Of a DNA stretch of 64,000 bases, positions 24,231 through 28,600 are shown piece by piece. The stretch is taken from assembly GCA_976226885.1 (NCBI GenBank), contig OZ320313.1:116064001-116128000 (forward strand). The letters are read 5' to 3'. The notes below the pieces were generated by a model that saw nothing but the letters and a program-made list of their open reading frames with translations, searched no databases and had not been told where the DNA came from. Position 1 is the first letter of the stretch. Every line of letters begins with the position of its first letter. Source of the DNA: Iphione sp. A-MEVVRFRX5 (Eukaryota). The position numbers and the translations under genes were made by a program.

Positions 24231-24607
24231 AAAGGAGTACCATCCGTTCTATTGTGGACAGGAGGGGAATTACAAGCATGAAGCGAGGGAGTGTTAATCC
24301 TTTAAGGAACTGGTCCAGAATGACTTTAAGGTAGGCCTACCCGACGGGGAATTCTCGGCGATTTTTCACCAGCCCTCAAACACCAGGTGTAATTCTGGAG
24401 TAACAACCCCAAAGAGAGATACAGGGCATTTAGTCAACTTCTTTCCTGTTGCGGATCAGCATTACTGCAGAGGACACAATGGAAGCCGTTTCCTGAAGCC
24501 CGGGCGAAATGGAATACATGTACATGTACATTGGTTAGGAAGGCGAGCTGTCATCTGTGGTAAAATGACGTATTGTATTGCATAAAATATGAAGGTGGAA
24601 AAGCATA

Positions 24608-24677
24608 CAGTGGAACCCCTCTACAAAGGACAGTTTTGGTCAGTCCTTTTGCTGTCCGTAGAAGAGAGTTTCCACTG
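24608..24677. mobile_element. 70-bp Tc1/mariner-type MITE
   Basis: TA flanks (24606-07, 24678-79). Imperfect TIRs CAGTGGAACCCCTCTACAAAGGACA / TGTCCGTAGAAGAGAGTTTCCACTG. Confidence 0.75.
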
Positions 24678-25282
24678 TATTTAGAAAATAGTCAGTAAAC
24701 ATATCTTTCTCTGCAAAGCATGTTTAATATCTGAACGCCAGATGGATGCGATGTCGAGGTAAAACATCTTGCTTTACTCCAATGACATAATCATCCACAG
24801 AAAGATGGTAGGCTAAAGGCACATAGCACGTAACCATCATTTCTCTCATCAAGATGGTACTGGACTGAAAGTAAAGGAAGGGAAAATTTTCGAACCTCCG
24901 AGAATAGGTGCAGGATACAGGCTATATGATATTACCAGATGTAGTGTGTCCCCCATGCCCGGAGGAGAGCCGCCATACAGGAATAGCCATGGCCCCGAAT
25001 AGCAACAGAGGTAGCCATAGAGGCCCTAGATAGGGCCTACCTTCGTAGCATTAAGAGTCACATACCAATTATACAAATTGATCGATTCGGCTCGGTCCTT
25101 GTTACTATGTATATAGGTTTGAATCTCAAACAAAACAGAACAAATATGTGACTCCAAGAACCCTGGCTATTATACCTATACTAAAGAAGGTCCAAGTCCT
25201 TTTCTTACAGACAGCTTTACTCTCGAAACCAATCACCGTCGCACCGCAGTGTCTCCCGCATTTCGAGGAACGAAGTAGACAG

Positions 25283-25462
25283 GTAAGTAGGCGCAAGTTC
25301 TAAAATGATTTGGAGTGATAAACATATTCTTTTTGGGATTAAAACGACCGTATTTAAACGGGGGACTCATCACTCGAAATCTAAATGCTTCGATGGCATC
25401 TATTAGCGGAAAATGGACCGGAAGCCCTCATTTCAAGTAGCTGGCGGGAAGGTGTTTCCTAG
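25283..25462 (+). other. Putative 5' UTR intron of the recombinase gene
   Basis: Perfect donor CAG|GTAAGT at 25283. Candidate acceptors are TTTCCTAG (25462) or TGCAG (25477), upstream of AAGATGG (ATG at 25486). Confidence 0.5.
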
Positions 25463-25485
25463 CAACGTGGTGTGCAGCCATCAAG

Positions 25486-27156
25486 ATGGATATTCCGCGT
25501 CGTGGCGAATTTTGTGGATTAAATGGCAGAAACGTGAGAGTAATCGACAAATTCTTTCCAGGCGGGCTAGATCAGCCGCTACTCCAAGTTGAAGATCTTT
25601 TAACTAAAGAGAAGCACAACGCCCGCCCTGATGAACTGGTGCGTGAGGCGACTGCGAATTTTGATCTCGGGCTGGATGTGATGGGAGAAATAGACGCGAA
25701 TATTTTGGAAAATACAGAAAACACTAAACCCGACGGCTCTAAGGGACGATTCTACATGCCAGACCAGAGTGAGATTGACAGTATGAAGAAAGAAGTAAAC
25801 CGAAAGGGCACTGTCGACCAGACCCGCTGGGCGGTGAAGATTTTTCGCGGTGTGTGAGATATATTGAATCTTGATGAAAATCTACTAAATTTGACTAAAT
25901 GGACTAATTTACTCTGCAGTGGTCTAAAAATACTATAATTAATGGCCCTGTCATTGTCTTTTTCAGATTGGCTGAGTTCCGTCGGGTACGATCTGGACTT
26001 CGAGGCGCTGCCCGCCGTGCAGCTCGCTGAACGTCTTGAAAAATTCTACACGACTGTACGCACAAAATCCTTCCAAATGTACTCCAAGAGCGCCTTTAAA
26101 AACATACGATGTGGACTGCAACGCCATTTGACTTCCCCGCCCCATTCACGAAATATCAACCTCCTCCAGGACAGTGACTTTCGCCAGGCCAATTTAGCTT
26201 ACAGCGGCTATATGGCGAAAATCCGTACGTCGGGTCGGGATGTGAGTGCCCACAAACCGGTGATAGAGGCCGAGGACATAGCCCTACTCTATGACAAAGT
26301 ATTCACTGATACCCCCGTGGGTCTGCAGCGCAAAGTTTTCTACGATATCCTATTCCATTTTGGACGTCGTGGTCGGGAAGGATTAAGGTACCTGAAGAGA
26401 GACTCATTTGTGTTGGCCCGCGATGCAGCGGGGCATGAATATGTCACAATGTCATTTAACGAGGCTGAGAAAACCAGAAGTGGGTTGAACAAGGATGAGG
26501 AGGACACCGAAAAAACTATGTATAGCTTACCATCTGATGCTCGGCGGTGCCCCGTGGAGTCGTTCAAAAAGTACATTTCTCTGTTGAACGAGCAATGCGA
26601 AGCATTTTTCCAGCGGCCCAGGCGCAAAGTGGATGGAGCCTCGCCCAGTTGGTATGAGAACGCCCCTCTAGGGGTAAACAGTTTATATGGCATGATGTCG
26701 GCAATGAGTAGAGAAGGGGGCCTAAGCTGTGTCTACACGAATCATTCAATCCGTCGTACCTGCGTGACGACTTTGGACAGAGCAGGGTACAGTGCCCAGA
26801 AAATCCAGTCCGTTACGGGCCACAAAAGCGCAGAATCACTGAAGCACTACCTGGGCGGACCGTCGAAGAAAGTCAAACTGTCGATGTCTAATGCTCTTAC
26901 CAATTATGGCAAGAAAGAGGAAGCCGCGACTGGATCAGCTGATTCCGTGAAAGTGGGTCAAAGTAAAATGGCGACCGCAACGGCAGTCAAGGCGGAGACC
27001 CGAGCGTACAGTTCAGATGAGGACGACCTGCAACTGACCCAGACCGTCACCACAAATGCAGCTGTGAACGTGCAAGATGAAGATTTATTCCAGTCTCTAT
27101 TTGGAGGGCAAAACACCTTAAACAACTGCACATTTAACATTACTTTCAACAAGTAA
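25486..27156 (+). CDS. Crypton-type tyrosine recombinase (DUF3504/KCTD1-KIAA1958-ZMYM-QRICH1-related YR domain), two coding exons 25486-25849 and 25967-27156, 517 aa
   Basis: ORFs 25486-25857 and 25942-27156 join through a phase-1 GT-AG intron to give ...QTRWAVKIFR-D-WL..., the usual Crypton T.WAV..F..W motif. Other Crypton motifs: YSKSAFKNIRCGLQRHL, TPVGLQRKVF, HFGRRGREGLR, CPV..FK.Y, FFQRP, WY...PLGVN, YTNHSIRRT, VTGHKS.ESLKHY. Catalytic R (26368), K (26470), H (26743), R (26752), H (26821) and Y (26848) are all present. Confidence 0.93.
25850..25966 (+). other. 117-bp phase-1 spliceosomal intron in the recombinase CDS
   Basis: G|GTGTGT donor, AT-rich body with branch-point-like CTAAT/CTAAA motifs, pyrimidine tract GTCTTTTTCAG|AT. 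Splicing restores the frame and the conserved F-R-D-W. Confidence 0.9.
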
Positions 27157-27227
27157 ACATGAGCGCTGTTTAGCTCCGTCCCGCATGGCCACCTGCGTCT
27201 AAGTGAGTGAGTTCCCGTAGTTTCACG

Positions 27228-27463
27228 CCGGAAGTGGCCGAGATCTGTTTTTTTTTTTAAATTTGAAACTAATTTTAGTTAAAAAGTGTCGCATTCAGTG
27301 CGTTTTATACTGTTTCTTATGACTTTCCTGCCAAGGTGACGTTTTTTCGTATCATACGTGCTTGCCCAATGGGGTTCTTCGACTTATTGGTTGTTGTCAA
27401 TAAAAATCCAAAATGGCGTCTTGTCGCACTTACATTATTGCGTCTTGCTTTTTCAAGGTAACT
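27228..27463 (+). promoter_or_regulatory. Promoter-like motif cluster with splice donor at the 3' end of the Crypton
   Basis: ETS-type CCGGAAGT at 27228-35, CCAAT at 27366-70, ATTGG at 27386-90, YY1-type CAAAATGGCG at 27409-18 and donor AAG|GTAACT at 27455-63. AATAAA at 27399-404 could also be the polyA signal of the recombinase mRNA. Confidence 0.4.
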
Positions 27464-27529
27464 ATTTGTATTGAATAGCATTAAATGGATGGGGAATCAT
27501 TTCAGAACCGAGTTTAACGACTTCGTGTC

Positions 27530-27619
27530 GGTACGAGTCAATGTTTCAACGCTAATGCCTCGGGCTGGGCCTATCGGCCCAGCCCTTGGCATATCGCGTT
27601 GAAACATTAGACTCGTACC
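27530..27619. repeat. 90-bp imperfect palindrome (hairpin/cruciform)
   Basis: GGTACGAGTC-AATGTTTCAACGC-..ATGCC-..GGGCTGGGCC [TATC] GGCCCAGCCC-..GGCAT-..GCGTTGAAACATT-A-GACTCGTACC. Weaker pairing extends outward (GAGTTTAACG at ~27510 / CGTTCAAACTC at ~27642). Confidence 0.95.
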
Positions 27620-27899
27620 TCCACTCCATCGCTAAACCCGACGTTCAAACTCTGAGTCTTCCACTGCTTTGATAGGCTAAATGGCTTCTCATGATGTACC
27701 ACAACACAGCCCTGGATGGTGCCAGCAAGTACCGGTATACCTGTATATACCTCTGTTGACCGAGTATGTGTTGCTGTATTTCATTTCATTAGGAGAAACT
27801 TCGCTATCAGAAGCACGCCTTTGCATCTATAATTTTCATGGTTTTTGACTTGAAATATTTTCATAAATCATATTTTCCTACGGTAGTACATAACTCAGT

Positions 27900-28600
27900 T
27901 ATCTCAATCTTGGGTGCATCTTAGAAAGTAGTCTCAGGCCTCAAAGTCTGTAAAGATGGTGAAACTTATAAGGAAGCTTCGTTATCGGAGGATTCATCAA
28001 TTTAAGTGGTATATCTCTAGACAAAATCTTACACGAGTATCAAGGTCGCACCGTAATCGACAAGCAAGCATTGACAACAAACACTGAACGGGTTAAACAC
28101 TATGACACGAGTACTGAGCAGGGAAAATTGTCCAATATTCAGGGATAAGATAACGGACTATTGGAGAGTTTTATTTCAGAAAGCCCTTGATCTCTAGCTG
28201 AAGCACGAAACCGAAAGTAACATATCATTTGTATGGAATTTATTCTATGTTGGATAGATTAATCTGAATTATGTCATATCTAGATACGATATTAATAAGA
28301 GCAAAACGAAAAACGATATGAATTCCATCTGGTCGTCAGGCAGCATATATTAGACCACGCTGTGGCAGCAAAAGCATGTAGATATGATAACAAGAATAGA
28401 AAACGTTCACGATGCAGGATAACCTAGGATCGGAAGACGATTTGATGGTCTCTAGTAAATCGGAGCCATACATTTTACCACCAGAGGAATGGTTAATACT
28501 AAGAGGTTTCTGGGAAGCACTACTGCGAGAGTAACAAAGACGCTTGGGATTTAGAAGCTACTAAATGAGTCATATCTAGGTAAAATATCTCTACAAACTA
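27900..28600 (+). mobile_element. Decayed LINE RT C-terminal fragment
   Basis: QFKWYISRQNLT (~27997-28032) resembles FKYLG..LD.NLT. Confidence 0.3.

Follow-up and report, generated by a model that had tools for sequence, protein, structure and literature searches.

Two open reading frames (ORFs) lie close together on the plus strand of the 64-kb stretch of DNA analysed here (the window), at 25486-25857 and 25942-27156 in the ORF listing. Joining coding exon 1 (25486-25849, +; amino acids 1-121 and the first base of codon 122) to coding exon 2 (25967-27156, +), which carries the tyrosine-recombinase core according to Pfam, AlphaFold2 and Foldseek, gave an open coding sequence of 1554 nt in spliced translation, encoding 517 amino acids and ending at the stop codon 27154-27156 (+). 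The GT-AG intron between them (25850-25966, +; 117 nt, phase 1) has the donor GCG/GTGTGTGA and the acceptor TTTTTCAG/AT, and were the intron retained, a TGA in frame beyond the donor would terminate the protein. When 80 related loci were compared, the main tblastn HSP began exactly at amino acid 122 in 24 and crossed the junction uninterrupted in 13 that have no intron, while the exon-1 ends of loci L001, L002 and L008 matched as far as amino acid 121. The conserved N-terminal domain begins in exon 1 (residues ~82-121), and residues 82-124 aligned without gaps to homologues P0064, P0076 and P0067 across the exon junction. From these sequence comparisons we conclude that the two-exon gene is real, with its predicted splice at 25849/25967; the open joined frame gives in silico support to the junction proposed in the first-pass annotation. 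An AATAAA at 27399-27404 (+), ~245 nt 3' of the stop codon, is likely the polyadenylation signal. The exon-2 ORF, at 404 amino acids, is the longest in the window, where only four other ORFs reach at least 150 amino acids (the longest 206), in keeping with the earlier claim that this is the sole uninterrupted coding sequence in the 64 kb.

Exon 2 matched the Pfam families DUF3504 (PF12012; 9.4e-14, 52.2 bits with the cut-off at 29.7) and Phage_integrase (1.4e-07), and a Pfam search with the whole 517-aa protein returned these two only, with no GCR1_C and no extra domain of host type. The full catalytic set is present: R256 (codon 26368-26370), K290 (26470-26472), H381 (26743-26745), R384 (26752-26754), H407 (26821-26823) and Y416 (26848-26850), all on the plus strand. 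They include the tetrad R-H-R-Y, with K and H/W besides, that defines the tyrosine recombinase of a Crypton. Alignment verified both the six catalytic residues and the tyrosine encoded at 26848 that had been read from the sequence at first. The hexad RKHRHY is kept in 100 of 114 homologues, and each catalytic residue is conserved in 109-119 of 120. The AlphaFold2 model (pLDDT 83.2, pTM 0.72) had as its best Foldseek matches Cre, XerA, the Tn1549 Int, XerH, IntI (2a3v) and QRICH1 (9hjt), with Cre first, and on the strength of this model we are confident that the recombinase has a Cre-like fold. QRICH1 (9hjt) was also among the profile matches, and the XerA profile alignment takes in the HxxR, H and Y residues. 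Cre shares the catalytic hexad, but it and the other structural matches are only 13-17% identical to the protein. The C-terminal tail (27079-27153, +) carries a motif common to the homologues, F-x-G-x-x-F-x-G ... T-x-N in the alignment consensus, in a part of the model where pLDDT is low.

Public protein collections hold no protein more than 50% identical to the 517-aa recombinase. Homologue alignments cover 99-100% of its length, and the nearest proteins are unnamed sequences from invertebrates or metagenomes. By sequence comparison, this is a new family, without a representative in public protein collections, although the kind of transposon is already known. At the nucleotide level the element showed no similarity to the L001 and L002 loci, because these relatives are too distant.

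Several of the related families are multi-copy. Family A comprises five loci with a 4.06-kb unit, its copies 97-99.5% identical and sharply ended; copies of family B are 98% identical, and loci L085 and L086 sit in different flanks. Since copies 97-99.5% identical are found at different loci, the clade includes clearly mobile families. The relatives carry an inverted copy of their own 5' end, which matches at 12 of 12 positions in family A and 11 of 12 in family B, is exact over 13 nt in family C, and is exact over 12-15 nt in seven further metagenome families (nine loci: L035, L044, L059, L079/80, L081 and L085/86/89). This copy always adjoins the inner edge of a palindrome with which the element ends, and in families A, B and L085/L086 the palindrome stops 0-6 nt from the copy boundary. 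Palindromes were found 3' of the gene in 19 of 32 loci, against 8 of 36 for the 5' side. The end architecture recurs in more than 10 families with a protein identity of only 30-50%; L001, which at 50% identity is the closest relative, has no palindrome within 4 kb downstream.

The same layout surrounds the gene described here. A 5'-terminal motif, GTTCTAAAATGATT (25297-25310, +), is similar to the 5' ends found in families B (GTTCTACCATGG) and C (ATTCTAACATGAC). Thirteen of its 14 positions match the reverse complement of 27495-27508, and this internal inverted copy (+) overlaps the inner edge of an imperfect palindrome of 142 nt at the 3' terminus (27505-27646). The palindrome, recognised from inverted repeats I1, I3 and I5 and from DNA folding (-52.6 and -57 kcal/mol, z-scores -12.0 and -11.5), is centred on GGGCTGGGCC-TATC-GGCCCAGCCC. 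GTTC at 25297-25300 (+) is a candidate 4-bp direct repeat or crossover site; in the single copy compared it recurs at 27643-27646, where the palindrome ends, and the element boundary is ambiguous within these four nucleotides on either side. Short direct repeats are a described signature of Cryptons (PMC13465315, PMC9977147); in the CryptonA group they would be ~4-6 bp long and equal to the target. In a constrained control, the score of the 13/14 inverted match was attained by 23 of 2000 shuffles and by none of 103 other element windows; a first, unconstrained search had been borderline (score 23, shuffle 95th percentile 22). Our search for inverted and direct repeats found nothing else that links the two ends besides this 14-nt subterminal inverted copy. 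The direct repeat TATACCT (25172 and 27736) was rejected as marking the ends, being a chance-level 7-mer that misfits the architecture of the relatives. At the 5' side lies a weak subterminal hairpin (25307-25381, +; inverted repeat I6, DNA fold z-score -2.6) with a TATA-like TATTTAAA inside it (25351-25358, +), a region that is possibly the element's own promoter.

Because this layout is that of the relatives, the likely ends shift to 25297 and 27646, by analogy with those families and by the 13/14 match, for which chance is put at ~1%; they would enclose a complete Crypton element of ~2,350 bp on the plus strand. The ends given in the first-pass annotation, 25205 and 27680, are by the relatives' architecture probably ~92 and ~34 nt too wide. 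An element of that greater width, in which 25211-25282 (72 nt) would be a non-coding first exon, spliced from a donor near 27457 over a circle or tandem junction and driven by a promoter at the 3' end, would account for a consensus acceptor at 25210/25211, the donor CAG/GTAAGT at 25282/25283 and AAG/GTAACT near 27457. It would also fit the CpG-rich block, which spans roughly the 25297-27646 interval but starts near 25200, ~90 nt upstream of the proposed 5' terminus. However, the copy boundaries of families A, B and L085/L086 fall at the motif that recurs in inverted form beside the palindrome, and that motif starts at 25297 here, so that 25211-25282 falls outside the element; we regard the wider limits as improbable. 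Another long palindrome is present in the window at 24605-24680. The 3' palindrome might itself be foreign to transposition, either a separate foldback or MITE insertion or a transcription-termination hairpin, given its position 3' of the AATAAA and the frequency of long palindromes in repeat-rich genomes, with the one at 24605-24680 as a local instance. Such an origin is highly improbable, as the palindrome forms the exact 3' boundary in multi-copy relatives and is adjoined by the inverted 5'-end copy in more than 10 families.

The gene content within these ends is that of a Crypton. No other ORF of at least 150 amino acids lies within 25297-27646, and no ORF or domain for a reverse transcriptase, RNase H or another transposition gene was found in or beside the element; the pairing of reverse transcriptase and RNase H with the recombinase that marks DIRS and Ngaro elements is thus missing. 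CryptonA recombinases match DUF3504, and those of DIRS and Ngaro do not (Kojima and Jurka, PMC3212892). The earlier identification of a Crypton-type tyrosine-recombinase element holds, since the DUF3504 match, the catalytic residues and the fold agree, and we provisionally assign it to the CryptonA type from the DUF3504 match and the gene content, set beside published descriptions of CryptonA. Like the CryptonA elements of animals (Crypton-1_NV, Crypton-1_SP and CryptonA-1_OL; PMC3212892), it has a lone tyrosine-recombinase gene matching DUF3504, is small, comes from a marine invertebrate host, and is without reverse transcriptase, GCR1_C or long terminal repeats. It differs from them in that its protein is at most 50% identical to anything found, and in its ends. 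Kojima and Jurka (2011, PMC3212892) reported that animal Cryptons are without any sort of terminal repeat, whereas this element and its relatives have a long 3'-terminal palindrome with the inverted 5'-end copy adjoining it.

A recently domesticated recombinase that kept catalysis had been offered at first as an alternative. The KCTD1, KIAA1958, ZMYM2/3/4, QRICH1 and WOC proteins have the same fold and belong to the same Pfam family, some homologues of the protein carry database names like 'KIAA1958-like', one copy is visible in the window, and the intron position is common to distant relatives. However, the known domesticated DUF3504 genes no longer have either the catalytic tyrosine or the second arginine and are fused into proteins that are far longer (PMC3212892), whereas the recombinase here is standalone and keeps all six residues, these two included. 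It is 517 amino acids long with no further Pfam domain, sits within transposon-type ends, and has 50% as its best identity, with no orthologue-like match above that, where a host gene would have conserved orthologues. Since transposon-type ends enclose the gene, host-type domains are absent and no relative exceeds 50%, we consider domestication very unlikely.

The copy also appears young. The element has a CpG observed/expected of 1.05, compared with ~0.5-0.8 nearby, in line with the plentiful CpG reported at first. Undepleted CpG and a full-length protein both count toward youth, as far as sequence can indicate age, although the high CpG could instead come from a lack of methylation. The surroundings had been described as a field of dead transposons, an impression that our searches did not bear out: none of 14 other long ORFs of the window gave a Pfam match above threshold, the window is nearly without internal repeats (251 bases), and Rfam matched nothing in the whole window. 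Neither runs of N nor contigs resembling human DNA turned up in the analysis. Self-comparison revealed neither a second copy or fragment of the element nor a repeated flank that would give an empty site within the 64 kb.

Taken together, we favour, at a probability of about 70%, a complete, autonomous DNA transposon of the CryptonA type, ~2.35 kb long (25297-27646, +), inserted fairly recently at GTTC. Of the earlier wording, a recent or active autonomous copy, it is the autonomous and recently inserted copy that we retain as the best reading, given an intact gene, a complete catalytic site and the presence of cis features known from demonstrably multi-copy relatives. The locus might instead hold an intact but immobile solitary copy, young yet silenced, promoterless or partnerless, and so a relic and not a live transposon. 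Consistent with such a relic are the lack of a second copy in the 64-kb window and of a relative more than 50% identical, the one mismatch in 14 positions between the terminal motif and its inverted copy, and the very low copy numbers of Cryptons in most hosts (Kojima and Jurka, PMC3212892). Against it stand an intact ORF and catalytic hexad, equally intact end features (terminal motif, inverted copy and palindrome), undepleted CpG, and related families that have clearly been mobile in recent time; immobility is on balance unlikely, if a serious contender.

An autonomous CryptonA of this kind would be of practical interest. To our knowledge, no other class of eukaryotic DNA transposons is as poorly understood as the Cryptons: their transposition has been seen in Chlamydomonas only, movement has yet to be demonstrated for any of them in animals, and the sites at which they recombine are undefined. 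With its complete catalytic site and its candidate ends (the 5' motif and its inverted copy, the palindrome at the terminus and the GTTC crossover), this intact copy could serve directly in assays of excision, circles and integration, and it is also a candidate compact eukaryotic site-specific recombinase. Because the end architecture recurs in more than 10 families, the question of where the recombinase cuts becomes testable.

For the mechanism, we propose that exchange between the short GTTC repeats, carried out by the recombinase, would release the element in circular form. Its 3' end would there join its 5' end, with a predicted joint of ...CCCGACGTTC joined to TAAAATGATT, and the palindrome would thereby be extended across the joint, mirroring the internal copy; in a model of the joined ends, the stem gains 8 bp. 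The circle joint would serve as the recombination site, and the circle would re-integrate at a short matching target, as in Goodwin's model, which has been seen operating for CryptonF-1_cRei in Chlamydomonas (PMC9977147). CryptonF-1_cRei, the first Crypton observed transposing (Lopez-Cortegano et al. 2023, PMC9977147), likewise has a short terminal sequence that equals its target (CACCG / CAYCG there, the candidate GTTC here) and fits Goodwin's model of site-specific recombination, as the candidate GTTC would. It differs in belonging to group F, with other domains, and in its demonstrated activity, and that paper describes no palindrome for it.

Other tyrosine-recombinase systems offer partial parallels to these ends. 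DIRS1-type retrotransposons have inverted terminal repeats and an internal complementary region. As proposed for the present element, they have an internal sequence that complements the termini once joined, and their tyrosine recombinase works on a circular form; unlike them, the element here has no reverse transcriptase, RNase H or methyltransferase, its recombinase matches DUF3504 where theirs do not, and its internal copy flanks a palindrome at the extreme 3' end. Cre-type core sites are ~34 bp long with a 6-8-bp spacer, in contrast to a 140-200-nt palindrome. Integron integrases and XerCD act on folded DNA (attC and the CTX-phage site, respectively), and the candidate site here is likewise a hairpin-forming palindrome, with IntI (2a3v) among the structural matches; that the present recombinase acts on folded DNA is speculation by analogy. 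Our more specific and tentative proposal, which we hold possible without favouring it, is that the recombination site of this widespread animal Crypton clade is not a short linear motif but the circle joint within a ~170-nt imperfect palindrome, mirrored by the internal inverted copy, with the recombinase working on a hairpin, extruded or folded, or else flipping the palindrome through two inverted sites. A palindrome-embedded joint, if true, would represent an undescribed mechanism of eukaryotic transposition, in contradiction to the published view of animal Cryptons as lacking terminal repeat structure. In family B, the orientation of the palindrome is flipped between two versions of one locus, L007 and L009, and this flip would be a trace of such a mechanism.

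An ORF scan of the window identified two plus-strand reading frames, at 25486-25857 and 25942-27156; the second (404 aa) is the longest in the window, where only four others reach at least 150 aa. Joining 25849 to 25967 in a spliced translation gave a single open frame of 1554 nt (517 aa), with removal of a 117-nt phase 1 intron bounded by a GT donor and a pyrimidine-rich AG acceptor. Because an in-frame TGA lies right behind the donor, the full-length protein requires removal of this intron, and with it removed the coding sequence is intact in two exons, as the first-pass annotation had proposed. Comparative evidence supports the predicted 25849/25967 splice. Residues 82-124 aligned across the junction without gaps to three homologous proteins, and the tblastn match continued across the junction position in 13 related loci, indicating that the intron is absent from them. 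The match began precisely at residue 122 in 24 of 80 related loci, and three loci (L001, L002, and L008) carry a distinct upstream exon with an alignment reaching residue 121. Judging from these alignments and from the breakpoints at residues 121/122, the intron position is old and common to part of the clade. Between a TATA-like box and the ATG that opens the main frame (25486) lies an upstream ORF of 15 codons (25394-25441).

Exon 2 matched the Pfam families DUF3504 (9.4e-14) and Phage_integrase (1.4e-07); as Kojima and Jurka showed, DUF3504 corresponds to the animal Crypton recombinase, and recombinases of DIRS or Ngaro elements give no match to it (PMC3212892). We found 157 matches among 5.8 billion proteins, with a top identity of 47-50% and named matches from bivalves, corals, echinoderms, and one salamander. 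An exhaustive phmmer search of 1.84 billion cluster representatives returned 6,803 relatives at E ≤1e-3 and 535 at ≤1e-30, none of them above ~50% identity. AlphaFold2, run on an alignment of 57 sequences, produced a confident model (pLDDT 83.2, pTM 0.72, core >90) with Cre, XerA, Tn1549 integrase, XerH, integron integrase, and the DUF3504 protein QRICH1 as its top solved-structure matches. Profile alignment placed H381-x-x-R384, H407, and Y416 on the catalytic residues of XerA; the remaining two catalytic residues are R256, within an invariant RRGRE motif, and K290. Each of these six positions was conserved in 109-119 of 120 homologues, and 100 of the 114 homologues covering all six columns read R-K-H-R-H-Y. 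All six catalytic residues reported earlier are thus present, with the tyrosine codon at 26848 as stated. The C-terminal tail (aa 493-517; 27079-27153) carries a motif common to most homologues, F-x-G-x-x-F-x-G ... T-x-N, in a region of predicted disorder. One homologous protein, P0076 from the salamander Pleurodeles waltl (670 aa), combines a KRAB domain (PF01352) with a Crypton-type recombinase 37% identical to the 517-aa protein, and may have been domesticated separately, in the role of a KRAB repressor.

In every feature tested the element behaved as a CryptonA, in agreement with its original description as a Crypton, and it is a new family within this known type. It did not have the properties of DIRS/Ngaro elements, nor those of domesticated DUF3504 genes, which argues against the recent domestication that had been offered as an alternative.

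No second copy of the element was found within the 64-kb window, and its ends were therefore defined through related families. In family A (the cluster of protein P0004, 16 members, 44% identity to the 517-aa protein), five loci fetched from one assembly shared a 4.06-kb unit, 97-99.5% identical and sharply bounded, between flanks that are unrelated; family B (P0005, 47-48% identity) comprised three loci ~98% identical. In both families the 3' terminus is a long imperfect palindrome (~180 nt in A, ~105 nt in B) extending to 0-6 nt from the copy boundary, and the 12 nt that open the 5' end recur, inverted, right against its inner edge (12/12 in A, 11/12 in B). Family C (locus L010, 44% identity) has a 172-nt palindrome and a 13-nt exact inverted match ~200 nt upstream of exon 1. 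Among 80 further loci fetched from metagenomes, a palindrome of at least 50 nt lay downstream of the gene in 19 of the 32 with at least 1 kb of downstream sequence, and upstream in only 8 of 36. Exact inverted matches of 12-15 nt adjoined the palindrome in seven more families (nine loci: L035, L044, L059, L079/80, L081, and L085/86/89). Two of these loci, L085 and L086, are insertions of one family whose similarity breaks off precisely at the 5' motif on one side and the palindrome's outer end on the other. The fetched stretch of L001, the closest relative by identity, contained no palindrome.

The element shows the same layout. A repeat search and DNA folding revealed an imperfect palindrome of 142 nt at 27505-27646 (-52.6 and -57 kcal/mol for the two strands; z-scores -12.0 and -11.5). 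A 14-nt stretch entering its left arm, 27495-27508, corresponds to 25297-25310 in inverted orientation at all but one position (13 of 14). Of 2000 shuffles, 23 scored as high, as did none of 103 other element windows. The 5' motif, GTTCTAAAATGATT, is similar to GTTCTACCATGG of family B and ATTCTAACATGAC of family C. GTTC occurs at 25297-25300 and again as the palindrome's final four bases (27643-27646); a circle crossing over with its target would be expected to leave a short repeat of this kind (PMC13465315; PMC9977147). Reading the palindrome, the inverted 5' copy, and GTTC at both sides as in the relatives, we place the element, from its one copy, at 25297-27646 (~2.35 kb), with a probability of about 0.8; the interval first assigned to it, 25205-27680, was probably too wide. 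Both the recombinase gene, whose active site is complete, and the cis features of the element are intact; cis features of this kind delimit relatives that have amplified recently. Kojima and Jurka reported animal Cryptons to be devoid of terminal repeats (PMC3212892), whereas this element, like a number of relatives, carries a terminal palindrome with an inverted 5' copy. The 2026 Glomhopper paper makes no mention of palindromes or hairpins (PMC13465315), and a 3' palindrome abutted by an inverted 5' copy was not described in the Crypton papers compared, these two included.

We propose that the gene would be expressed as its own transcription unit, from the TATA-like sequence (25351-25358) to AATAAA (27399-27404), and that the element would excise as a circle through exchange at the short repeat. 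The circle joint would lie within a lengthened palindrome, mirroring the internal copy, and the circle would re-integrate at a short matching target. In line with this model, joining the proposed ends in silico lengthened the hairpin stem by 8 bp. The palindrome may provide a substrate in cruciform or folded-strand form, a pair of inverted sites, or an internal complement of the DIRS kind.

The plentiful CpG noted earlier was borne out: observed/expected was 1.05 across 25205-27680 and, in 300-nt windows, 0.8-1.3 from ~25200 to ~27700 versus ~0.5-0.8 on both sides. Unlike sequence farther out, the right flank (27800-28500) is likewise CpG-rich (~1.0-1.2), and the Crypton may be nested in another young or unmethylated element of ~1 kb. 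On the left, a CpG-rich 72-nt segment (25211-25282) with one open frame ends 14 nt upstream of the proposed 5' end, flanked by a consensus acceptor (ttttcttacag|) and donor (CAG|GTAAGT). This segment may belong, as an exon, to a host gene or another element, the Crypton having inserted 14 nt into the next intron; or it may be part of the Crypton itself, as the first-pass annotation assumed.

Several observations concern the ends of relatives. Two versions of one family B locus, L007 and L009, are 99.2% identical across 6 kb, right flank included, yet carry the terminal palindrome (L007:6716-6820 and L009:6717-6821) in opposite orientations: the L007 palindrome matches L009 at 103 of 105 positions as reverse complement and at 92 of 105 in direct orientation. 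This would fit a flip-flop as in hairpin-ended replicons, or an inversion between arms. Two metagenome contigs start inside long palindromes (L023:1-264 and L083:1-184; arms ~90% identical) that lie upstream of the recombinase gene; they may have been assembled across a tandem or circle joint, or may represent lineages in which the 5' end bears a palindrome. Finally, the ends of L085, L086, L035, L044, and L081 show that in several metagenome families the right flank begins with AA and inferred targets resemble AATTAA or AGTTAA, which hints at a preference of these families for AT-rich, partly palindromic targets.
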